Made by a program: the position numbers and the translations under genes. Positions 2,185 to 45,359 of a stretch of 64,000 bases of DNA are shown one piece after another. How positions within the stretch are numbered: position 1 is the first letter of the stretch; the number at the start of each line of letters is the position of its first letter. Location of the stretch: the IMG/VR virus record IMGVR_UViG_3300024336_000005, positions 124,001 through 188,000 of that record; one strand, 5' to 3'. The notes under the pieces are model-generated. The model was given only the letters and a program-made list of their open reading frames with translations, searched no databases and was not told the origin of the DNA.

Positions 2185-2577
2185 ATGAAGCAGGGCGTAA
2201 GCATAGTTGTTCTCGGTTTGACCGAGGATTTTGAAACTAAGGTTCTTATCTGTGAGCGTAAGGATGGCAGCGGATACTGTCTGCCAGGAGGGAAGATTGA
2301 TCCCGGCGAGAGGGGCGAACAGGCTGCAATGAGGGAGCTCTTTGAGGAGACTGGAATCTACCTTAGCGCTGCCAACACACGGCATCTGTACTCAGGCGTA
2401 GAGATCCCCGAGTGGATCACTACTACCTTTTATCTCCCGTACAAGCTGAAGATAGCTGATACTATCCTTTCTCCTGGTGAGGGAGAGCCACCCTGCAAGT
2501 GGGGCACTTGGGAAGAGCTCTTTGGTCCCCCCTTTGGCGACTACAACCGTAAGGTATTTGAGGTGATGCGGACGTGA
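2185..2577 (+). CDS. NUDIX hydrolase
   Basis: Nudix box GGKIDPGERGEQAAMRELFEETG. Confidence 0.92.
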   Translation: MKQGVSIVVLGLTEDFETKVLICERKDGSGYCLPGGKIDPGERGEQAAMRELFEETGIYLSAANTRHLYSGVEIPEWITTTFYLPYKLKIADTILSPGEGEPPCKWGTWEELFGPPFGDYNRKVFEVMRT

Positions 2578-3617
2578 GTAACTCTAAGTCTTTTGATGAC
2601 TATCTTATGTCTCCTCGGTATTCTGATATTGAATCAAGGAGTGAGGTTTCTCTGGAGACTTCTTTAGGGCCATATACCTTTAGTCTCCCTATTATCTCTT
2701 CTCCTATGGATACTATCACTAATGCTGAGATGGCAGCGGCGATGGCTGAGGCCGGAGGCTTAGGGATTGTTCACAGAGGACAAGAGGCTGCAGTACAGGC
2801 CCACGAAGTTGGCCTGGGAGTGGTGATAGCGCGCGAAAAAGGTGTAAAAGATCCTATCATTGGTGCAGCCATTGGCGTAAAGGTTGAAGATGTTGATAGA
2901 GCTGAAAGGCTTGTAGATGCAGGGGCTAAGATCCTTTGCATTGATGTCTGTCATGGACACCACATCAATGTGAAGCGTCAGATCAAAAGGCTGCAACATC
3001 TTAATACCACCATCATTGCTGGAAACATTGCCACCAGAAATGGTGCAATGTTTCTTGCAGACCAAGGGGTGGCTGGCATTAGAGTTGGCATTGGCAATGG
3101 TTCCATTTGTTCCACAAGACTGAACACTGGACACGGCGTTCCACAAGCAACAGCATTGATGCATGCCGCGTGGGGAGTGTCTGGAGTTATGGATAGTACC
3201 AGCCCACCAGAAGCCAGGCCTGCTCTCATCTCAGATGGTGGTTGTCGTAACGGAGGAGACATCGTTAAGGCCCTTGCGCTCGGTGCTGATATGGTGATGT
3301 TGGGTTCGATGCTTTCGGGTACATATGAAACCCCAGGCAACTGTGATGACGACGGTTACAAAGTGTACCGTGGCATGGCCTCTGAAGGAGCCCAGGCCGA
3401 CTGGGGCGGTGGAGTTAAGTCAGTGGAAGGGGTCACTGCTAAGGTGCGCTCCAAGGGGGCTGTAGGCCCCTTGTTGGACGCCCTTGCTGAGAATCTTCGA
3501 GCAGGGCTGTCTTACTCAGGGGCTAGAACCATTAAGGATCTTCAAGCATGTGCTGACCGAATCATTGTATCTCAATCATCACTGAGGGAAAGCGATACGC
3601 ATATTCGCTTCCAGTAA
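2574..3617 (+). CDS. IMP dehydrogenase / GMP reductase family protein (no CBS domain)
   Basis: SSPMDT, IDVCHGH, GIGNGSICSTR (catalytic Cys), SDGG, YRGMAS, EGV. Confidence 0.93.
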   Translation: MSNSKSFDDYLMSPRYSDIESRSEVSLETSLGPYTFSLPIISSPMDTITNAEMAAAMAEAGGLGIVHRGQEAAVQAHEVGLGVVIAREKGVKDPIIGAAIGVKVEDVDRAERLVDAGAKILCIDVCHGHHINVKRQIKRLQHLNTTIIAGNIATRNGAMFLADQGVAGIRVGIGNGSICSTRLNTGHGVPQATALMHAAWGVSGVMDSTSPPEARPALISDGGCRNGGDIVKALALGADMVMLGSMLSGTYETPGNCDDDGYKVYRGMASEGAQADWGGGVKSVEGVTAKVRSKGAVGPLLDALAENLRAGLSYSGARTIKDLQACADRIIVSQSSLRESDTHIRFQ

Positions 3618-3629
3618 TAAGACTGCGCA

Positions 3630-3685
3630 CTCCCAGTAAGGGAGAAGTAGGGTTGGCTGCGCTTGGACTGCGTCCAATGCTGGCC
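3630..3685 (+). ncRNA. repeated structured RNA motif, copy 1
   Basis: CTCCC-AGTAA-GGGAG hairpin, then GGC-TGCGC-[TTGGAC/GTCCAA]-TGCTG-GCC. Confidence 0.55.
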
Positions 3686-3750: not shown

Positions 3751-3825
3751 GGTCCTCTAGCCAAACGGTCAAGGCAGCCGCCTGATAAGCGGCGATACCT
3801 GGTTCAACTCCAGGGGGGACTACCA
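3751..3825 (+). tRNA. tRNA-Ile(GAT)
   Basis: GCCGC-CTGATAA-GCGGC anticodon arm, CCTGG/CCAGG T-arm, CCA. Confidence 0.92.
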
Positions 3826-3861: not shown

Positions 3862-4059
3862 ATGTCGTCAAGGAACAGAGAGAATGATGCGACGATTAAG
3901 AGGTTGCAGCGAGTGTCGGATGTCCTCAAGCAGGAGATGAGGGAGATCCCCTTCTTGCCAAAGGACATCACGGACACTTTGAACGGTACCATCAGCTACG
4001 TAAAGCGTAGATGTGCCGCGCTAGGTCCAGTAGAAGAGGCATCTGACTCACCAGAGTAA
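3862..4059 (+). CDS. hypothetical protein
   Basis: RBS AAGGAG; 65 aa. Confidence 0.6.
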   Translation: MSSRNRENDATIKRLQRVSDVLKQEMREIPFLPKDITDTLNGTISYVKRRCAALGPVEEASDSPE

Positions 4060-4082
4060 GTGTCCAAATAGCTTTTGTCTTA

Positions 4083-4412
4083 CTCTTAGTGAAGAGGAGA
4101 CATGTAGCACCTAAACTGGCTCCCTAGTAGCCGAGAGTCGGCGGGTCGTTCAGTTTAGGTGCAGTAGTTACCGAGCCAGCAAAGTCATCGATCGTACGTC
4201 AACAAAGAAGAGCTAGTAGTATAGACTAGTAAGCTTCAGACGTCCGGCTCGAGACCCAGTCTGGCGGCCGGCGGAGGAGATGATCTCCGGCGCCGTGGGA
4301 CCGTACTTGGTCCGCCATGGTAACTACAACTGCAGCGAGGAGACATGTACATGATCCAGACCTGGTCACCAGCTCTTAGGGGCCCATAAGGCCTGACCTG
4401 GATGTCCATGTC
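4083..4412 (+). ncRNA. large multi-stem non-coding RNA candidate
   Basis: Perfect inverted repeats 4107-4118/4151-4162 and 4164-4172/4319-4327; also 4173-4177/4246-4250 and 4342-4347/4407-4412; no credible ORF. Confidence 0.55.
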
Positions 4413-4495
4413 GATAACGCTGTGGAGAACTACTTCTATATATGTCAAGTACTACAATAGGTCTAGAACTATTGGGCATAAAGAAGGGTAGTTCT

Positions 4496-5048
4496 GCGGG
4501 TGAAGTGTTTAGGTTGCACGTCTGGCTTCCTTCCAAACTTTCGCTGTTATTGGAATCCAAGCACTACGCTTGGAGGGCTACAATGAAAGTTTGCACTAAA
4601 TGCAATGAACAAAAGACACTAGAAAACTTTTCATGGAAAGATAAAAATAGAGGAAGAAAAGCTTCCGAATGTAAGAGTTGTCATAAAATAATGAGGTTGG
4701 CTTATTATCAAGCTAACAAAACAAAAGAAAGACAACGAGCAAATCATCGCAGGATGAATCTCAAAGCATGGTACAGGGACTTAAAGAAGACACTGTGCTG
4801 TCATAAATGCAGAGAGAGCCACCCTGCGATATTACATTTTCACCATAAAGTTTCTAACCAAAAAGAACTTGAAATATCTATAGCCATCAACCATGGATGG
4901 TCAAAAGAGCGCATTCTAAAAGAAATGAATAAATGCGAAGTTCTTTGTGCCAATTGTCATGCTAAGCATCATTGGGATGAAAGGTACGAATAGTGCTTTA
5001 CATTCCTCAACCCAGAAAGACAGAGTTCGATTCTCTGTACCCGCACCA
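4496..5048 (+). tRNA. tRNA, probably Gly(TCC), interrupted in the anticodon loop by an ~480 nt HNH-coding insert
   Basis: 5' half 4496-4530 (GCGGGTG, D-arm, TCTGG-CTTCC) pairs with 3' half 5010-5048 (AC-CCAGA, CAGAG-TTCGATT-CTCTG, TACCCGC-A-CCA). Confidence 0.8.
4583..4993 (+). CDS. HNH homing endonuclease-like protein inside the tRNA
   Basis: N-terminal CxxC..CxxC; CHKC..LHFHH..LCANCHAKHH; RBS GGAGGG; AT-rich. Confidence 0.85.
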   Translation: MKVCTKCNEQKTLENFSWKDKNRGRKASECKSCHKIMRLAYYQANKTKERQRANHRRMNLKAWYRDLKKTLCCHKCRESHPAILHFHHKVSNQKELEISIAINHGWSKERILKEMNKCEVLCANCHAKHHWDERYE

Positions 5049-5054
5049 TCCTTA

Positions 5055-5143
5055 CTCTGAGAAAAGAGGAGGAGAACATTAATATATATAAGGCCAATCT
5101 TGCGCTTTTTCAATGCTCGATCGAGTTCTTATATATATTAATG
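5055..5143 (+). ncRNA. repeated structured RNA motif, copy 2
   Basis: CTCTG-AGAA-AAGAG; TGCGC (5101) and TGCTC (5114) lie inside a perfect 16 bp inverted repeat 5077-5092/5128-5143. Confidence 0.55.
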
Positions 5144-5749: not shown

Positions 5750-6859
5750 ATGTCGCACACAACTCTTTTTCATAAGGGCAAGGCCAACAAGCTGTACTCA
5801 TGGACCATTTGGACTGAAGGTGACGAAATTGTTACCGAACATGGGACTGCAGAGGGCAAGAAGCAGGTCTCACGTAAGAAGGCCACGCCAAAGAACGTAG
5901 GCAGATCCAATGAGACCACAGCAGAGGAGCAGGCCGTGCTTGAAGCACAGGCCATGTGGACCTTCAAGAAGGAACGCAAGTACTCAGAGTCTCCTCATGA
6001 GGCAGAGCAAACACTCTTCCTCCCCATGTTGGCACAGGACTTTGAGAAGAAGAAGTCTAAGGTTAGCTACCCCGTAGATGTTCAGCCTAAGCTGGATGGA
6101 GTTCGCGCTCTTGCTACTTGGGAGGGAGAAGAGGTTAAGCTCTACTCTCGTTCAGGTAAGGAGTGGAACATTCCTCATCTAGCAAGACAGCTTGAGGCAG
6201 TCTTGCCTAAGGATAGAATTGTTGACGGTGAGATTTACATCCATGGTGTGAGCTTCCAGGCAGTGACTCGACTGGTTAAAAAGCATAGACCAGGAGAGAG
6301 TGAGAAGCTTAATTACTTCATCTACGATATGGTGATGAAGGGGGCAGAGAACACAGAGATTGGCTGGCTTCCTCGTAAGCATCAGCTGGCTGAGTTCTTT
6401 GGGTCCTTTGATGAGAGCTTGGCTCCCAACCTCATTCATGTTCAGAGTAATGATGCCCCAAGTGAAGAGGAAGTCTATTATCTACAGCAGAAGCTAGTAG
6501 AAGAAGGCTTTGAAGGTGCCATCGTAAGGGTCCTCAATGGATTCCCTTACATTTATGGCTACCGCTCAGCTGGTCTGCTCAAAGTAAAGACCTTCTCGGA
6601 TGAAGAGTTTAGAGTGGTTGGGCATACCATGGGAGTAGGCAAGTTCGCTAATACCCCTACGTGGGAGTGTATCACCAATGAGGGGAGGCCTTTCCGGTGC
6701 CTGTCCAAGGGAACGAAGGCCGAACGAGAGGCCATGGGAGCCAATGCTGAGTCCTACTATGGGCAGATGCTAAAGGTTCGCTTCTTTGAGAAGTCAGAAG
6801 ATAATATCCCAAGGTTTCCAATCGGTATAGGCTTTAGAGACCCCAGGGATATGTCATGA
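5750..6859 (+). CDS. ATP-dependent DNA ligase with an N-terminal WGR-like domain
   Basis: Motif I QPKLDGVR, VDGEIY, EGFEGAIVR, LLKVK. Confidence 0.93.
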   Translation: MSHTTLFHKGKANKLYSWTIWTEGDEIVTEHGTAEGKKQVSRKKATPKNVGRSNETTAEEQAVLEAQAMWTFKKERKYSESPHEAEQTLFLPMLAQDFEKKKSKVSYPVDVQPKLDGVRALATWEGEEVKLYSRSGKEWNIPHLARQLEAVLPKDRIVDGEIYIHGVSFQAVTRLVKKHRPGESEKLNYFIYDMVMKGAENTEIGWLPRKHQLAEFFGSFDESLAPNLIHVQSNDAPSEEEVYYLQQKLVEEGFEGAIVRVLNGFPYIYGYRSAGLLKVKTFSDEEFRVVGHTMGVGKFANTPTWECITNEGRPFRCLSKGTKAEREAMGANAESYYGQMLKVRFFEKSEDNIPRFPIGIGFRDPRDMS

Positions 6860-7255: not shown

Positions 7256-7264
7256 GAAGACATA

Positions 7265-7355
7265 CTCCCGGAAGGGAGGAGTCAATCTTAATTTGTCCTC
7301 CGCTTGGATGCATTAGAAATGCACCCAATGTTGCTAGGCAACCCAATGCTCGGAC
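7265..7355 (+). ncRNA. repeated structured RNA motif, copy 3
   Basis: CTCCC-GGAA-GGGAG-GAG; GTCC-TCCGC-TTGG...CCAA-TGCTC-GGAC. Confidence 0.55.
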
Positions 7356-7620: not shown

Positions 7621-7630
7621 CATTTTCTTA

Positions 7631-7699
7631 CTCCTAGAGAGGAGGAGAAAGACTGTCCTGCGCTCCTCTTCCACTACGTGGTCGCGGATGCTCGGAGTC
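7631..7699 (+). ncRNA. repeated structured RNA motif, copy 4
   Basis: CTCCT-AGAG-AGGAG-GAGA; GACT..CC-TGCGC-TCC...GGA-TGCTC-GG-AGTC. Confidence 0.55.
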
Positions 7700-7897: not shown

Positions 7898-7907
7898 CAT
7901 AGTCTAA

Positions 7908-7975
7908 CTCTCAGAAGAGAGGAGACGTACATAACGACAGCCCCTGCGCTCAACTACGTTGATGCTCATGTCTGT
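7908..7975 (+). ncRNA. repeated structured RNA motif, copy 5
   Basis: CTCTC-AGAA-GAGAG-GAGA; TGCGC-[TCAAC/GTTGA]-TGCTC. Confidence 0.55.
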
Positions 7976-8136: not shown

Positions 8137-8235
8137 ATGTTCTTGTTAATTGGTTTGCTTTGTCTCATTGCAGGAGCCTACAAGGTTGCACTGCTGTTTG
8201 TAATCCTTTCTGTATTCCTTGGGGAATGGCAATGA
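8137..8235 (+). CDS. small hydrophobic peptide (32 aa)
   Basis: RBS AAGGAG; MFLLIGLLCLIAGAYKVALLFVILSVFLGEWQ; stop overlaps the next ATG. Confidence 0.45.
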   Translation: MFLLIGLLCLIAGAYKVALLFVILSVFLGEWQ

Positions 8236-8546
8236 AGCATCCAATAAGGCCCAGCCCGAGAAGGGTTACCATTTCTCCTTACAATTCTTTAAGATGGGCA
8301 TTCAAAGAATCAGGATTATCCTTTGAAGAATTCCTTGATGCAGACTTAGTTACACGTGACTGTGGTTGCTACCATGACTGTAGCTGTACTGGAGTGGACC
8401 TTCTAGTAGAGACTGATGACCACAAAGAAGCCATGAGTAAATACAACAAAGTTTTACTTGAGTGGCATCTTTGGGAGGAAGGGGAAATGGAAAGGAAGGA
8501 GAGGCTCCAGCTTGAGGAGCTCAAGGCTAAATATGAGGCAAATTAA
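8232..8546 (+). CDS. hypothetical protein
   Basis: ATGA-coupled ORF. Confidence 0.55.
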   Translation: MKHPIRPSPRRVTISPYNSLRWAFKESGLSFEEFLDADLVTRDCGCYHDCSCTGVDLLVETDDHKEAMSKYNKVLLEWHLWEEGEMERKERLQLEELKAKYEAN

Positions 8547-12568: not shown

Positions 12569-13263
12569 GCTACTCAAAGCTTTTGATGACCCTTGTCCCC
12601 GGAGAGACAACAGTAGGGGTCCTCATCGAGAAGAAGAATGGGACTAAGGAAACCTTTAGGGTTGCACAAGACTCAATTTCTTCTATCTTTTCAGGGAACT
12701 ATTGTTCTGGATACTTGCCCTCCTCTCAGGATGGCGTTGTCTATCTAGAAGAAAAGGAAGGCAACAAGTTAGTGGTCATCCAGCGAGGGGCCAGAGAGGC
12801 TCAGGATCTTCAGTGGAATGACCATACTGGGACTCGTGAGCAGATGAAGATAAAGACAAAGACTCCGAATGCCTTCTTCGTCTTTGTCTTGGGTCCGTCA
12901 GAGGGTGGATACAGGATTAAGAAGGAGCGTATCTTTGTTTCGACTGGTCCGACCAGAGGGCCTACGACCCCTCTGTATAATGCAGAATGGTTGGGCAATG
13001 TATACAATCGTTCGCCTAGCGATGGCGCGAGGACAAACATTTGTTGGGGGACAACTACTGTTGCTCCAATGGGAATTGTAAGTGTCTCTTCTTTGATGAA
13101 TATCGCTAACGATTTCTTTACTCAGGACTTTACACAGCACCTACGTGGGACAAGAGCCATCTGGGAAGAATACAATAATACCAGAAGCTTTAGAGAGACT
13201 CAGCGTATGACTTTGGCTGAAGTGATCAGGAGGATGTGGGATGGACTTCCGGACACCCATTGA
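12565..13263 (+). CDS. prokaryotic E2-like protein (Prok-E2_D / PRTRC protein B type)
   Basis: PNAFFVF..TPLYNAEWLGNVY..NICWG (putative catalytic Cys). Confidence 0.72.
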   Translation: MSYSKLLMTLVPGETTVGVLIEKKNGTKETFRVAQDSISSIFSGNYCSGYLPSSQDGVVYLEEKEGNKLVVIQRGAREAQDLQWNDHTGTREQMKIKTKTPNAFFVFVLGPSEGGYRIKKERIFVSTGPTRGPTTPLYNAEWLGNVYNRSPSDGARTNICWGTTTVAPMGIVSVSSLMNIANDFFTQDFTQHLRGTRAIWEEYNNTRSFRETQRMTLAEVIRRMWDGLPDTH

Positions 13264-14356
13264 GCCTAAGCCTGAATTTCTTAAGAAGTTCGAAGCTCAA
13301 GAGTGGGCGGTGCACCTTGGAGAAATTCCAGAGACTTTAGTAAGGAACTCAACCCTCTCCATCTTTGGAGATGGTAAGTATCTCACAAGGTCAAATCCCA
13401 TTGGGACTTTTACGCGCAGAATTGAGCGTATGGATATTCCTACATTGGATCATGGACCCGACCCAAGCTTCTCCTTGAAGCTACCTAAGGTGCCTGCTGC
13501 TATTCTGATGAAGCAGGTGAGCTTCTACCGTGAGGTAATGAAGCTCTTTAATGATGCAGAAGCCTACTCCATTGTCATGTATGACACTGTAGAAGAGCAA
13601 TACTTTTTGGTCATTCCTGAGCAGACCATCTCTAAGGCGCACGTTAAGTACGATCAGCCTGAGCTAAGGAAGAAGTACCCTTCCGACCGCTACATTGAAG
13701 TTATCTCTGCTCATAGTCACAACTCTATGAATGCATACTTCTCTCCCCTTGATGACAAGGACGAGAAGGGAGATATTCTATACATGGTGATGGGTAAGTT
13801 GAACCAAGAGGTTCCAACCTATTGCATCCGTGCAAATGTGGCTGGTGCGGAGTGCGTCAAGCTTCCCCTTGAGGATCTGTTTGATCTTTCTGAAGAGAAC
13901 TGGGCAGAGCTTTCTCCCTATTGGGAAGACCTTCATGACAGCACTTGGGTCGAGCAGCTCCATGTTCGAGGGCCTGTTGTTAGTGCTCACTCTCAGTTTG
14001 ATCAGATGCTTAAGACCTTTCAGGGCTCTCGCCCAAGAAGGCCTTTCACTGGTAGAACAACGGGAAGCCAGATGGACTTCTTTAACCAGACCGAAAGTGA
14101 AGTGGGGAGCGAAGGCTCTGAGCAAAAGGAATTCATTACAATCGCCTGTGCCTTGATTAAGGACGCTAGAAGCTTACCTCCTGAGCAGGTTATGTTTAAT
14201 CTGATATCGAATCTCTTAGAGAGGGGATACGCAGAGGACATTCATGCTGCCATTGTTGCTTGTGATCATGTTGAAGAATTCCAGGCGATGGAAAAAGATG
14301 ATTGGGAATTAGATATGAAATTGCGTATGGAGTTAGATGATGGCTGGTATTCTTAA
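13241..14356 (+). CDS. JAB/MPN+ metallopeptidase (PRTRC protein A type) with a C-terminal extension
   Basis: EAYS...SAHSHNSMNAYFSPLDDKDE = E..HxH..S..D. Confidence 0.88.
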   Translation: MDFRTPIEPKPEFLKKFEAQEWAVHLGEIPETLVRNSTLSIFGDGKYLTRSNPIGTFTRRIERMDIPTLDHGPDPSFSLKLPKVPAAILMKQVSFYREVMKLFNDAEAYSIVMYDTVEEQYFLVIPEQTISKAHVKYDQPELRKKYPSDRYIEVISAHSHNSMNAYFSPLDDKDEKGDILYMVMGKLNQEVPTYCIRANVAGAECVKLPLEDLFDLSEENWAELSPYWEDLHDSTWVEQLHVRGPVVSAHSQFDQMLKTFQGSRPRRPFTGRTTGSQMDFFNQTESEVGSEGSEQKEFITIACALIKDARSLPPEQVMFNLISNLLERGYAEDIHAAIVACDHVEEFQAMEKDDWELDMKLRMELDDGWYS

Positions 14357-15503
14357 TTTCGAGGGAATTGATCCACTCCTAAAGCTTTCTTCAAAGCTTG
14401 GAGTTGCACTTGATAGCGCACAGGATTTGCATCCTGTCTTCCGAATCGCAGGGATTGTTTCTCAGACGGGAACGTTGCTGGACTATGCCGTCAAGCTTGT
14501 TCCCGATCGGCCAGAGACTAAGACGACTGTGGTGCAGAACTACCGAAACGTACATACCTTTACGGCACAACAGCCGACCATAGTTATGGTAGGTTGTGGC
14601 GGTACGGGCAGTCACTTGCTTCCAAATATTCTACAGTATGCAATCACCAAGGCGGCTCAACAGACTGTTACCCCTCCCTGTGTCATCATTATCGATGGAG
14701 ACGGAGTGGAAGAGAAGAACCTAATTCGACAGAGGTTCACTCAAGCGGACCTTGGAGAGAACAAGGCTATTGCCTTGTCTCGTCGCTACAGTGCAGTGTT
14801 TGCTACAAAGATTAAGGCTGTAGACACTTACCTTGAGGACTCAAAGCAGCTGATTGGCCTTATCAAGGACGAAGCCCCAGCGGTTGGTCCTATCATTTTA
14901 GTAGGGGCAGTGGATAATCACAGAGCTCGTGCTATTTTGTGGGACACCTTCTTGAGCGAGACCCAGAGGGAGATCTGGTGGGTTGACGCAGGAAATGAGT
15001 CCTGGCATGGTCAGGTCATTTCTGGGTGCAGGAATGTACAGACAAAGGGAGATTCCCATTGGGCTGCCGCAGGCATCGGAGATGATATTGCTTCTGTTGA
15101 TCTGCCTTGCTTCTTCGATGAGTATCCAAAGGAGTTCATGAAGATTGGCGGTACGCCAACGACTCCACAGAATACTTGTGCTGCAGTGGCTGAGGAGGAC
15201 CCTCAGACCATTCATGCAAACTCATTGTCAGCCCAATGTGCTTCAAACATTATCACTCAGATTCTTGAGGGTGAAGTTAGAGTAATGGGATTGAACTTTG
15301 ATGCAAAGACTGGTCAGGTTAAAGCCAAGATTCTTACACGAGTGAACATCGCCACCGCATACGTTGACATGAAAAACTCAAGAACTTCTCTTCGGGGATT
15401 CCTTGGGGACCTATGCTCGTGGAAGGGGAAGTCTGAACCGGCGACTCTCTTCCCGGGACTATACAAAAAAGCAAAGGTAGAGGATCTCTATACGGCTATT
15501 TAA
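14337..15503 (+). CDS. E1/ThiF-family adenylating enzyme (PRTRC ThiF type)
   Basis: GCGGTG, DGDGVEEKNLIRQ, GENKA, AVDNHRAR, WVDAGN, NTCA..Q..N. Confidence 0.92.
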   Translation: MMAGILNFEGIDPLLKLSSKLGVALDSAQDLHPVFRIAGIVSQTGTLLDYAVKLVPDRPETKTTVVQNYRNVHTFTAQQPTIVMVGCGGTGSHLLPNILQYAITKAAQQTVTPPCVIIIDGDGVEEKNLIRQRFTQADLGENKAIALSRRYSAVFATKIKAVDTYLEDSKQLIGLIKDEAPAVGPIILVGAVDNHRARAILWDTFLSETQREIWWVDAGNESWHGQVISGCRNVQTKGDSHWAAAGIGDDIASVDLPCFFDEYPKEFMKIGGTPTTPQNTCAAVAEEDPQTIHANSLSAQCASNIITQILEGEVRVMGLNFDAKTGQVKAKILTRVNIATAYVDMKNSRTSLRGFLGDLCSWKGKSEPATLFPGLYKKAKVEDLYTAI

Positions 15504-16357
15504 TGTACAGACAGTATAAAATAAAGAAGCGCAAAGGAGGGTTCAGAACTATTACTGAACCCTCTGACTCTTTAAGTGAGATGCTGTCTTACCTTAAGGT
15601 GCACTTAGACGCCCTGCCCATGAGTGAACATGCTCATGGCTTTATTGTGAATAAGAGTATCATTACAAATGCCCTGCCGCACCGGAACAAAAGATATGTC
15701 CTTAACCTAGACGTTAAGAACTTCTTTCCCAGTGTTAGAAGGCCTCTGATGATGGAAAAGTTAGCTCCCTTCTTTAATGAAGGGAAGCTTCCTCTAGACA
15801 TCAGAGATTGGATTCATGAGTTGTGCTTCTTTGAAGGAGCGCTACCTCAGGGCTCACCAACCTCTCCTGTTCTTTCTAATCTCTATATAGCAGAGATAGA
15901 CGAAGAGCTAGTCAGAGTAGCAGGGGAGATGGACTGTACTTATACTAGGTACGCTGATGATATGACCTTTTCAGGAGGAGACGTCCTGAAAAGTGAGAGG
16001 GATAAGGTGGCGCGCGAGGTCGATCTTCTCTTGCAGAGGATTGAACTAAAGCTCCACCCACGTAAGGTAAAGCTTATGCCATACTATCAGAGACAGATTG
16101 TCACTGGCATTGTGGTAAATAATGAAAAATTGACGCTACCTAGATGGTACAAAGAGGAACTCTTCCTTGCTACAAAGGGAGAGGATCCGTCTACCTTCGA
16201 TGAACAATTCAGGGGTGTTCTTGAGTATGTTCGTTCGGTAGATTCACAATTCTATAAAAAAATGTGCAACCATATGATTGCACCAAAGGAGAATGAAGAT
16301 GGCAACACTTCCAGAGTGGATCACAGAGGTCCGATTTTATGCAACGACTCCCAGTAG
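15503..16357 (+). CDS. retron-type reverse transcriptase
   Basis: KKRKGGFRTI, NALPH (region X NAxxH), LDVKNFF, LPQGSPTSP, YTRYADD, QIVTGIVVN (region Y VTG); TAATG coupling to E1. Confidence 0.9.
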   Translation: MYRQYKIKKRKGGFRTITEPSDSLSEMLSYLKVHLDALPMSEHAHGFIVNKSIITNALPHRNKRYVLNLDVKNFFPSVRRPLMMEKLAPFFNEGKLPLDIRDWIHELCFFEGALPQGSPTSPVLSNLYIAEIDEELVRVAGEMDCTYTRYADDMTFSGGDVLKSERDKVAREVDLLLQRIELKLHPRKVKLMPYYQRQIVTGIVVNNEKLTLPRWYKEELFLATKGEDPSTFDEQFRGVLEYVRSVDSQFYKKMCNHMIAPKENEDGNTSRVDHRGPILCNDSQ

Positions 16358-42428: not shown

Positions 42429-44149
42429 TTGTAAAGTTCGACTTTCTGGGACTCCGCACACTTGATGTAATTGAAGACGCCTGTCGTAGCATAGAGAAAA
42501 GAACTGGAGTGACTATTGATTGGGAACAGACTCCCGAGGATGATGGTCCTACATTCGATATGCTCAGCAGAGGAGACACCTTTGGTGTCTTCCAGCTGGA
42601 GGCATCTGGTATCTCTGGGTTTACCAAGGGATATAAGCCAAGGTCTATCGATGACATCTCAATCATCTCAGCTCTATACAGACCTGGTCCGCTGGATAAT
42701 GGGATGGTAGATGCCATTCTGTCTGTCCGCAAGGGGAAGAAGATTGAAGAGAGTCCTGTTGATGTCATTAAAGAAATCCTTAAGGATACGAATGGGGTTC
42801 TGACATATCAGGAACAAGTATTAGCAATATCAAGGGAGATGGCTGGGTTTACCCTGTCGGGTGCTGATCTATTGAGGCGCGCGATTGGCAAGAAGCTGCC
42901 CGAAGAGATGCAAGCGCAGGAGCAAAACTTTGTTGATGGCTCCGTAGAGAAGGGGTATCCAAAGCATCAAGCTTTGGAAGTATTTGAAATCATTAAGAAA
43001 TTCGCTGACTATTGTTTGTCATATGATACTAAGGTATTGACCGATAAGGGGCCTCTCTCAATTGGTCATATTGTAGAAAATCAGCTAGAGGTTTCTGTTT
43101 ATTCTATTGATGAGCATGGGCTTGTCTACTCTCAGCCGGTGGCTCAGTGGCATGACAGGGGCATAAGAGAAGTCTTTGAATACAAGCTTGAGGATGGCTC
43201 TGTCATCCGAGCGACCGAAGATCATAAGTTTATGACCGTCGATGGAGATATGCTTGCTATTGAAACAATCTTCCTGCAGAATAGGGATATGCTTGTCATT
43301 GAAACAGGCAAGATTCAAATAGGGGAGATTGAAATGAAGCCTTATAATAAACTAAATGACCTGGACAAACAACTTGTCCAACGACTGTACTATGAAGGAT
43401 TATCCTTTGAGGACATCTCAAAGGAAGCTGTGGTATCTCAACGTTCTGTTAGTCGTGTTTTGCAAGAGGCTAATATTAACACCAGAAGGAAAAACCGTTA
43501 TACCCTTAATGAAAGCTTCTTCTGTGGAGCATATGATCATTATGAATGTGCATATTTTTTAGGCCTACTGGCAGCAGATGGATGCGTTACTCATAAGGAT
43601 TACATCGCCCTCCAGCTTATTGATGAAGAACTTGTCTTATGGTTTCGCAAAGCGATCGAATACTCAGGAGAAGTTCGGCTTATCCTTGGCGAGGAGCGAA
43701 AGCCCCCTGGCCAAGATGCCTATAGGGTGAACTTTAGCTCTGCCATAATGTCAGAGGAACTTCGTTCATATGGAATCATTGCCGGAAGACATCTTCAAGC
43801 AATTCCGAAGTTAGAAGATTCAATTGTGCCTCATTTTATTCGAGGGTATTTTGATGGAGATGGATGTGTTTACTTAAGGCCAGAGGGTTCTGGTGGAGTT
43901 GTTCATATTGTAGCCTCCGAGGCGTTTTGCGAATCGCTTAAAGAATACTTTGGATTCGGAACAATTAGTTCACATCCCAGTGGTATGTATTATTGGAGGA
44001 TCTTTGCAAAAAAACATGTGAATGTTTTTTATGAAGCCCTATATGATTCTGATGGTTCAGAGACCCTGTGCCTTAATCGCAAAAAGCAACTAATGGAAGC
44101 CTTCCTACGGAGCTACAAGTATGAAAATTGTTGGAAAGCAAAGGATTGA
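42429..44149 (+). CDS. dnaE: DnaE exon 2 fused to IntN (43013-43333) and a LAGLIDADG endonuclease (43334-44149)
   Basis: KFDFLGL, GVFQLE, LYRPGP, LRRAIGKK, FADY|CLSYDT; FLGLLAADG, FIRGYFDGDG. Confidence 0.92.
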
Positions 44150-44225
44150 GGATCAATCAGTCTATGATATTGGAGTAGAAAAAGACCATAACTTTCTTCT
44201 TGCTGATGGACAGGTTGCTTCCAAT
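43013..44225 (+). mobile_element. DnaE intein, discontinuous between the endonuclease and IntC
   Basis: C1 at 43013; block B ATEDHKF; IntC 44121-44225 VYDI..DHNF..ASN|CFNKSH. Confidence 0.9.
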
Positions 44226-45359
44226 TGCTTTAACAAAAGCCATAGTGTGGCCTATTCAATGCTTTCATATAGAACAGCTTATCTTAAGTGTCACTATCCT
44301 TCTGACTTCTATGCTGCAGAGCTTACGAGCCACGAAGGGGAAGTCAAGAAGCTTCTCCCAGCAATGGCAGATGCTCGAGCACACCACATGAAGATCAAGA
44401 CTCCTGATATTAATCTTAGTGAGGAGTGCTTTACGGCGACCGCCAGACATGAAATAAGGTTTGGACTTGCTGGAATTAAGGGGCTTGGGACAAAGGCTCT
44501 TCAGTCTATTATGAATGAAAGAGCCAATGGGAGTTTTGAGTCTATCACTGGCTTATGCAAGAGGCTCTCCTCTTCTGAGATTAAGTCGAATAATCTCACA
44601 GCCTTAGCAAGGTCTGGTGCATTTTCCCAAATAGAAACTGGAATGAACACAGCAGAGCTTGCAGAGTATGCCGTTAACACAGCGATTGCTCTTCGTAGCT
44701 ATCATAAAGATGAGAAGAAAGGCCAGGTGTCTATCTTTTCTGTTATGACTGAAGCTCCAGAAAATGAGATTAATGTTCAGAGACCGTCAATTCATTTGGA
44801 TGATGGAGATGAACTGGAGCTAGAGAAGGAAGCCTTGGGCTTTTATATCTCAGGATCTCCTCTGGATAAGTACAATACTATTAAGGAAAGATCCCATATA
44901 GATGAAATTGAAAGCTTAGAAGTTGATGGCATTTGGGTATCAGTTCTTGCCAGGATAACAGAGCTTAAGATTAGAAATGGAAAGAGGGGAAGCTTTGCAA
45001 TACTACAGCTAGAAGATACTAGCGGCAGCATTGGAGCTAAGATTTGGTCTAACAATATGGCTGAAGCTCGTCCATACTTAGAAGAAGGTAAGAGTGTTGT
45101 TGTCAGAGGAAAGACAAACTCCTACAAAGGACTTGAAATTGTTGTGGATTCTATTGTAGACGCTGAATCAGAAGTGAAAAGACTTTTGAAGAGAGTGGTC
45201 ATTCATAGACTTGATTCCACGATTTTAAATACACTCTTGCAATTGCCTGCAGGAAATGTTCCTATAGATCTTGAGCTTTCAAATGGCCAGATCAAACAAC
45301 GACTTGGATTTTTTGAAATCCAACCCCACATGCTGAGGGAACTGAATGAGATGGACTGA
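44121..45359 (+). CDS. dnaE: IntC plus the DnaE C-terminal part (HhH, OB fold)
   Basis: MKIVGK..ASN|CFNKSHSVAY, IRFGLAGIKG, EKEALGFYISG; GGAG upstream. Confidence 0.92.
   Translation: MKIVGKQRIEDQSVYDIGVEKDHNFLLADGQVASNCFNKSHSVAYSMLSYRTAYLKCHYPSDFYAAELTSHEGEVKKLLPAMADARAHHMKIKTPDINLSEECFTATARHEIRFGLAGIKGLGTKALQSIMNERANGSFESITGLCKRLSSSEIKSNNLTALARSGAFSQIETGMNTAELAEYAVNTAIALRSYHKDEKKGQVSIFSVMTEAPENEINVQRPSIHLDDGDELELEKEALGFYISGSPLDKYNTIKERSHIDEIESLEVDGIWVSVLARITELKIRNGKRGSFAILQLEDTSGSIGAKIWSNNMAEARPYLEEGKSVVVRGKTNSYKGLEIVVDSIVDAESEVKRLLKRVVIHRLDSTILNTLLQLPAGNVPIDLELSNGQIKQRLGFFEIQPHMLRELNEMD

Follow-up and report, generated by a model that had tools for sequence, protein, structure and literature searches.

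An uncultured marine phage of 204 kb carries, among its clustered tRNA genes, a real, non-coding and heavily base-paired RNA region (positions 4083 to 4412), which we examined together with its adjoining structured modules as one segment (positions 4076 to 4495). Tentatively, and with somewhat less than even confidence, we read this segment as a cis-acting structured spacer of a polycistronic tRNA transcript; the spacer may also survive as a stable RNA. Positions given without a prefix are those of the window, the whole 64,000-nucleotide stretch of DNA that was analysed, which corresponds to bases 124001 to 188000 of a 204,008-bp IMG/VR virus record. The record originates from seawater metagenomes, is judged complete, and has a G+C content of 49.6%. 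G000 denotes the whole phage genome and L-numbers (L003 to L030) denote loci of relatives. Between 84 and 132 kb, the genome carries a same-strand run of 32 tRNA genes, and the structured RNA sits within it, between a conserved gene for a 65-aa product and a split tRNA-Gly gene. The features discussed are as follows.

2185-2577, + strand, NUDIX hydrolase gene
2574-3617, + strand, GMP-reductase-like gene
3751-3825, + strand, tRNA-Ile
3862-4059, + strand, conserved 65-aa gene, left border of the RNA and synteny anchor
4076-4495, + strand, RNA spacer (H0 and D1 to D4) between the 65-aa gene and tRNA-Gly
4076-4102, + strand, H0 hairpin (13-copy alignment, covariation)
4094-4106, + strand, 13-nt repeat, copy 1, formed by the H0 3′ strand plus four bases
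4107-4162, + strand, D1 hairpin (fold inspection, complementarity)
4164-4327, + strand, D2, a three-way junction with a 9-bp closing stem
4330-4425, + strand, D3, a long irregular hairpin
4337-4349, + strand, 13-nt repeat, copy 2, within D3
4426-4495, + strand, D4, an AT-rich hairpin abutting the tRNA-Gly 5′ exon
4496-4530, + strand, tRNA-Gly(UCC) 5′ exon, from the acceptor to C36 (ARAGORN with introns; orthology and synteny with L014, L015 and L028)
4531-5009, + strand, low-GC HNH-bearing insertion of 479 nt (ORF 4583-4993)
5010-5048, + strand, tRNA-Gly(UCC) 3′ exon with encoded CCA
5051-5071, + strand, H0 copy closing the tRNA-Gly unit
3′ of the HNH gene (4583-4993), + strand, tRNA-Lys and then tRNA-Phe
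5750-6859, + strand, ATP-dependent DNA ligase gene, 3′ of tRNA-Lys and tRNA-Phe
15503-16357, retron-type reverse transcriptase (RT) ORF (PADLOC, NCBIfam)

Syntenic relatives were found via the GMP reductase and the 65-aa ORF family, which has 20 members in a profile search. The 65-aa product is 48% identical to its counterpart in L015 and 39% identical to the small ORF in the same place in L014, and the order tRNA-Ile(GAU), small ORF, tRNA-Gly(UCC), tRNA-Lys(CUU) recurs in L014, L015, and L028 to L030. The phage database yielded no match to serve as a close relative for covariation. IMG/VR, queried with four proteins and two DNA patterns, returned besides the same phage one distant locus (L003; 27% identity), along with three single-copy H0 pattern matches on short contigs (L009 to L011) that we took for chance. 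A scan of JGI metagenomes for relatives found the same phage only. Near-identical sequence matched 17 sequencing runs, and the four that were compared showed zero differences. Elsewhere in the window, positions 42509 to 45359 hold fragments of a DNA polymerase III alpha subunit of the DnaE type, whose finger-domain ORF contains an intein and a LAGLIDADG domain. Outside the window, ARAGORN made unusual tRNA calls at G000 112781-112868 and 121165-121297. One has a four-base anticodon (tgta), and the other, called with introns allowed, is a tRNA-His carrying a 47-nt insertion.

The initial annotation, made from the sequence alone, had described a multi-domain RNA with a direct repeat, and this description was borne out by the fold, the shuffles and the frame analysis. 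Every helix that it named is present where it was said to lie: the 12-bp perfect stem (4107-4118/4151-4162), the 9-bp stem (4164-4172/4319-4327), and the GAGCC/GGCTC, CTAGT/ACTAG, GGAGAT/ATCTCC, GGACC/GGTCC, GACATG/CATGTC, ATCCAG/CTGGAT and GGTCA/TGACC stems. The minimum free energy fold reproduced the three domains, and the 13-nt repeat has exactly two perfect occurrences in the 64-kb window (4094 and 4337), against an expectation of 0.13 occurrences with up to one mismatch tolerated. Compared with dinucleotide shuffles, positions 4060 to 4445 gave z-scores of −4.72 and −5.72 for the + and − strands, respectively, and positions 4100 to 4430 reached −5.9 against mononucleotide shuffles. As a control, random 331-nt windows of the genome averaged −1.97 (standard deviation [SD], 1.98), with 4 of 45 at or below −4, and positions 4101 to 4400 ranked 193rd of 2,038 in a GC-regressed scan of 300-nt windows. 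Because the genome is itself structure-prone, the segment is clearly above chance yet only about 2 SD beyond the genome's own background; its structure places it in the top few percent of the genome without making it unique. Two stretches outside the window, at G000 54.9 to 55.4 kb and 58.3 to 60.9 kb, are the most structure-prone of all; there, the G+C content rises to 0.73 and one 331-nt window has a z-score of −10.9.

The 436-nt gap from the 65-aa gene to the tRNA-Gly gene is non-coding. No open frame was found in the structured stretch under any single stop-codon reassignment, as all frames contain mixed stops, and the long ORFs of the genome end at TAA, TGA and TAG alike. ORFs antisense to the stretch had zero family matches, and no second copy of it occurs across the genome.

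A covariance-model search against Rfam, which the initial annotation had proposed as a check, assigned no family to the stretch. At the gathering score, Rfam 15 (covering tmRNA, RNase P, SRP, 6S, group I/II introns, GOLLD, ROOL, HEARO and msr) found only tRNAs in the window, and relaxing the search to E ≤ 10 under permissive filters yielded no match that overlapped positions 4060 to 4428. The nearest row, snoZ182 at 4429-4509, is at chance level (20 bits against a cut-off of 80), and the L015 spacer likewise had no convincing Rfam match. The annotators' failure to match the RNA to tmRNA, RNase P or SRP agrees with Rfam 15 and, for tmRNA, with ARAGORN. At a lowered threshold, ARAGORN offered only an implausible permuted tmRNA model; tmRNA acceptors carry G3·U70, and the acceptor stem here has G3-C70. 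A group I intron interrupts a gene with joinable exons and has a 5′ splice site after U, a terminal G and a conserved P3-P7 core. Here, the upstream ORF ends at 4059, no exon resumes after 4412, and the Intron_gpI model with its P3-P7 core had no match over the stretch at E ≤ 10. We also rejected a tRNA-derived domain, as 4141-4163 aligned to the 5′ half of tRNA-Gly with a score of 17, while shuffles averaged 15.5 with a maximum of 23.

The first module, H0, consists of a 6-bp outer stem with a U·G pair, a bulged A, a 5-bp inner stem and a 4-nt loop, and its core reads CTTACTC...GAGGAG. Besides the copy after tRNA-Gly, further copies occur at 7261-7281, 7627-7647 and 7904-7924 of the window and at G000 111530, and roughly half of the copies lie 0 to 6 nt 3′ of a tRNA 3′ end. 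H0 is also found in L015, L019, L021 and L024, including directly after the 65-aa ORF homologue. Across 13 distinct copies, 91.6% of the cells are paired compared to 76.5% ± 2.4% in shuffles, and 26 cells show double changes compared to 9.7 ± 2.6. The covariation score of these copies was 0.45 versus 0.15 and was reached by none of 500 shuffles; when the partner strand was slid by 1 to 3 columns, the paired share dropped to 50 to 70%. The U·G pair is retained in 12 of the 13 copies, which argues for RNA-level constraint on the + strand. Neither a promoter-like nor a terminator-like site was found at H0. H0 is a recurring punctuation hairpin at the ends of tRNAs or genes in this phage and its relatives.

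The hairpin that follows, D1, has a perfect 12-bp outer stem (100% complementary), a short middle helix, a 5-nt internal loop, and a 5-bp apical stem capped by a GAG triloop, amounting by inspection of the fold to about 22 stacked base pairs. A covariance model built from the window's D1 and D2 alone placed its best match right after an H0 in each search: at 7763-7887 in L015 (E = 0.037), 592-739 in L021 (E = 0.03), and 3143-3323 in L024 (E = 0.022), where the match beyond D1 runs into tRNA-Tyr and is credible for D1 only. Applied to L003, L004 and L006, which are more distant phages, the same model gave no match. The D1-like hairpins of the three relatives (L015 7763-7821, L021 595-648 and L024 3145-3199) are unrelated in sequence, and MAFFT gave no meaningful alignment of them. 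They have outer stems of 12 to 13 bp, triloop apices, and 21 to 23 stacked base pairs, so that the first two modules, H0 and D1, recur in relatives' spacers. Among these three loci, 9 to 10 of the 12 outer pairs differ on both sides, with no G·U pair in the 38 bp scored. Together with the fully complementary stem in the window, these G·U-free stems could equally be young palindromes or reflect a DNA-level constraint. With about 20 or more stacked base pairs, an internal loop being allowed, as the measure of an RNase III-type substrate, D1 is long enough to be a candidate cleavage site.

The remaining modules appear to be lineage-specific, judging from the sequences compared. D2 comprises a long arm (4175-4265) and a Y-shaped arm (4266-4317); no counterpart of its topology was found in the syntenic relatives, and no conservation of D2 and D3 was detected there. 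Long structured spacers nevertheless occupy the same syntenic place in L015 (397 nt; z = −7.7), L021 to L023 (332 nt; z = −4.4) and L019 (z = −7.4). They share no primary-sequence similarity beyond H0, as pairwise local scores were at shuffle level, and no common topology; the 13-nt repeat or a comparable one is absent from them. That these spacers are equally structured without sequence similarity fits selection for structure rather than for specific nucleotides. The spacer is essentially absent from L014 (77 nt), L027 and L028 to L030, and is therefore dispensable. All inter-tRNA spacers in this part of the cluster are structured (z = −1.9 to −7.2), and the spacer studied here is the largest of the cluster and contains a true multiway junction. 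In all 8 spacers examined, the + strand fold has the higher frequency of G·U pairs, and in 6 of the 8 it is the more stable. The homologue and covariation search suggested in the initial annotation had a divided outcome, with covariation in H0 and a D1 architecture common to three relatives but no counterpart of D2 or D3.

A second recurring motif, always on the + strand, consists of YSCGCU, a 4- to 5-bp stem with a triloop, and AUGCUC. It occurs in the window at 5101, 7299, 7659 and 7945, with a variant at 3657, and in relatives at L014 2282, L015 7308 and 12652, L019 2807, L021 170, L024 1579 and L028 585. In every relative it is often located some 75 to 125 nt upstream of tRNA-Ile(GAU), and its inner stem covaries by eye. 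The strict form (UGCGCU...AUGCUC) is enriched, with 5 copies in G000 compared to 0 to 4 in shuffles, and a loose regular expression for it did no better than shuffles.

A metatranscriptome contig from a seawater assembly spans positions 3872 to 4655, covering the ORF, the RNA and the tRNA exon. This is compatible with co-transcription, bearing in mind that an assembled contig allows for DNA carry-over and does not give RNA ends. Contig depth was 13.2 over the RNA and 2 to 7 over the flanks, a measure that cannot rank expression. Neither a sigma-70-type promoter nor an intrinsic terminator was found at the borders of the RNA.

Immediately downstream, the tRNA-Gly gene is broken in its anticodon loop, after C36. 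With introns allowed, ARAGORN pairs 4496-4528 with a 3′ half that ends at 5048, bridging 479 nt, and reads the anticodon as UCA, mislabelling the gene tRNA-SeC(UCA); synteny and orthology identify it as tRNA-Gly(UCC). When 4496-4530 is joined to 5010-5048, the loop reads CTTCCAC, the T arm is as in the L014 tRNA-Gly(UCC), the acceptor has G1-C72, C2-G71 and G3-C70, and 12 of 12 acceptor and anticodon-stem pairs form, so both exons are intact. This is the sole tRNA-Gly gene of the genome. The insertion has a G+C content of 0.31 to 0.39 compared to 0.50 for the genome and holds an intact HNH endonuclease ORF (phrog_2255; E = 2e-26), and its left end is homologous to a cassette in L004 that follows just after a tRNA-Gly-like gene. 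That gene, at about L004 2885-2960, is tRNA-Gly(UCC)-like, was missed by ARAGORN because of its short D arm, and immediately precedes the homologous HNH cassette. Related HNH genes lie next to tRNA-Ile (L004) and tRNA-Trp (L006). In L015, a 30-codon HNH-family remnant (8198-8289), with an N-terminal CxxC fused to a C-terminal CxxCH, lies between tRNA-Gly(GCC) and tRNA-Gly(UCC), just upstream of the latter, which suggests a long association of the HNH endonuclease with tRNA-Gly genes.

Neither familiar intron type accounts for the insertion. A group I reading fails, as the insertion follows C36 in the Gly register and has a terminal G in no register, and so does a bulge-helix-bulge reading, as the two junctions, both pyrimidine-rich, cannot pair with each other. 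No spliced tRNA-Gly joint was found in the contigs examined. A gene for an Rnl-type RNA ligase lies inside the tRNA region but outside the window (G000 97361-98068), and no RtcB was found in the genome. The split gene would mean either RNA-level removal of the HNH cassette by an unfamiliar route or the loss of the sole tRNA-Gly.

The initial annotation had further proposed the structured RNA as a trans partner for the RT. The RT is indeed retron-type (PADLOC retron RT models at about 1e-58; NCBIfam retron St85 at 191 bits, below the cut-off of 235). It directly follows genes for a PRTRC-like ThiF (E1-like) protein and a PRTRC-A-like protein-A/JAB-like protein within 13241-16357. A search beside the RT for structured RNA found none: the flanks code for protein, and windows there had z-scores between −0.1 and −2.6, which makes an RNA supplied from elsewhere conceivable. 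Retron RNAs normally adjoin their RT; an msr-msd RNA has terminal inverted repeats, a1 and a2, the first of them followed by a branching G, and its msDNA is made with the RT. A 9-bp stem (4164-4172/4319-4327) followed directly by G4173 loosely resembles a1/a2 and the branching G, a feature that any closed multiloop could show. The RNA (4076-4495) and the RT (15503-16357) are 11 kb apart, not adjoining in one transcript; no Rfam msr model matched; D2 is branched, whereas an msd is a single long hairpin; H0 and D1 are modules of tRNA spacers in general; and no RT was found in the partial DNA of relatives that carry such spacers. An msr-msd-like template or primer RNA acting in trans is thus a remote prospect. 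Nothing was found that links the RT to this RNA, and we prefer the spacer reading. What stands of the initial annotation is a structured non-coding RNA without a known family; the partnership with the RT is not supported.

If the segment is a transcribed spacer within the tRNA-cluster transcript of this marine jumbo phage, its modular build would suggest a division of labor. H0, which follows the 3′ end of the gene or tRNA before it, may act as a 3′-end stabilizer or as a site for a processing protein. D1, with about two helical turns and an internal loop, may be an RNase III-type processing site in the style of the T7 early genes, and the stable helices of D2 to D4 would keep the flanking tRNA folding independently and resist nucleases. 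Given such insulating, nuclease-resistant helices, the spacer, once excised, may remain as a stable by-product, like T4 RNA species I and II. In favor of a spacer are the lack of a Rfam family and of coding capacity, the position in a same-strand run of 32 tRNA genes, borders without promoter or terminator, H0 covariation with its U·G pair, the + strand G·U bias, D1-like hairpins in three relatives, structured spacers both between neighbouring tRNAs and in syntenic relatives, and the contig that spans the ORF, the RNA and the tRNA exon. Against it stand its absence from several relatives, the structure-prone genome, and RNA evidence that consists of contigs.

An independent gene for a stable, trans-acting ncRNA, new in class and perhaps working as a decoy or scaffold like GOLLD or ROOL, with H0 and D1 merely as its 5′ processing signals, strikes us as rather unlikely. 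The size of the spacer, its multiway junction, a z-score (−5.9) beyond nearly all random windows, the higher contig depth over the RNA, and the fact that GOLLD and ROOL adjoin tRNAs in phages (PMC12286853, PMC5737381) would all suit such a gene; the depth cannot rank expression, though, and neither the sequence nor the topology of D2 and D3 is conserved in the syntenic relatives, several of which lack the spacer, nor was a promoter or terminator of its own found. Varying presence among relatives would also suit functionless filler. Here the segment would be fast-evolving palindromic sequence or what is left of a mobile insertion in a hyperplastic region, its structure stemming from inverted duplications instead of selection, which we consider unlikely. 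Long stems that are perfectly Watson-Crick without G·U, genome-wide negative z-scores, and a mobile-DNA hotspot with an HNH cassette here and an HNH remnant in L015 are what filler would produce. It would not readily produce G·U enrichment on the + strand in 8 of 8 spacers, covariation in H0, or four unrelated sequences in the same place that are all far more structured than background.

The perfect stems also bear on a DNA-level element, in which hairpins with a 5-bp stem and 3-nt loop, plus long palindromes, serve as hairpin promoters or as an origin or recombination site. The virion RNA polymerase of phage N4 uses hairpin promoters, and triloop hairpins with 4- to 6-bp stems recur here in D1, in D2 and in the UGCGCU...AUGCUC motif upstream of tRNAs. 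Such an element is nonetheless quite improbable, as H0 keeps a U·G pair that would be a mismatch in DNA, folding and G·U content are strand-asymmetric, and the triloop sequence is not conserved. Very improbable, in our view, is a discrete RNA of a new class that serves as the distal template of the orphan retron-type RT or as a guide or ribozyme removing the HNH insertion together with the phage RNA ligase.

Should the modules work as proposed for a processed spacer, H0 and D1 would be two unreported RNA signals by which this group of uncultured marine phages punctuates its tRNA operons. That would provide a handle on the processing of large phage tRNA arrays and on cassette exchange. The long structured spacer is also a candidate stable phage RNA that is covered by no database.

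Several known systems resemble parts of this locus. Retron msr-msd loci share with it a retron-type RT in the same genome and, only loosely, the closing stem followed by G in D2; unlike them, the RNA is not beside the RT, matches no msr model, and is branched. GOLLD and ROOL are large structured RNAs that are often beside tRNA genes in phages and prophages (PMC5737381, PMC12286853). Unlike these, our RNA matches no Rfam model and has no core conserved across relatives. It is also smaller than GOLLD and ROOL. PeSL are promoter-terminator stem-loop cassettes of T4-type phages (PMC2839356, PMC4122927). Similarly, H0 is a short conserved stem-loop that is repeated at gene boundaries of a variable region and flanks units differing between relatives, but it has no sigma-70-like promoter or U-tract terminator, keeps its U·G pair, and follows tRNA 3′ ends; the phage, with its DnaE-type polymerase pieces, is also not T4-like, unlike the phages that carry PeSL.

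For D1, the closest parallel is in phage T7. RNase III cuts R1.1-type hairpins between T7 early genes, and D1 likewise has about two turns (21 to 23 bp in the three relatives) and an internal loop and stands between units of a polycistronic transcript. Unlike in T7, cleavage of D1 is a prediction, and D2 and D3 have no T7 analogue. RNA species I and II of phage T4 are stable, structured non-tRNA RNAs that lie among its tRNA genes, in a stretch that also contains the homing endonuclease segB and differs between related phages (PMC2330249). Unlike species I and II, the RNA described here is known from sequence and predicted fold. It is two to three times longer than either. Like them, it is non-coding and lies among tRNA genes on the same strand, in a variable region that also holds an endonuclease gene.
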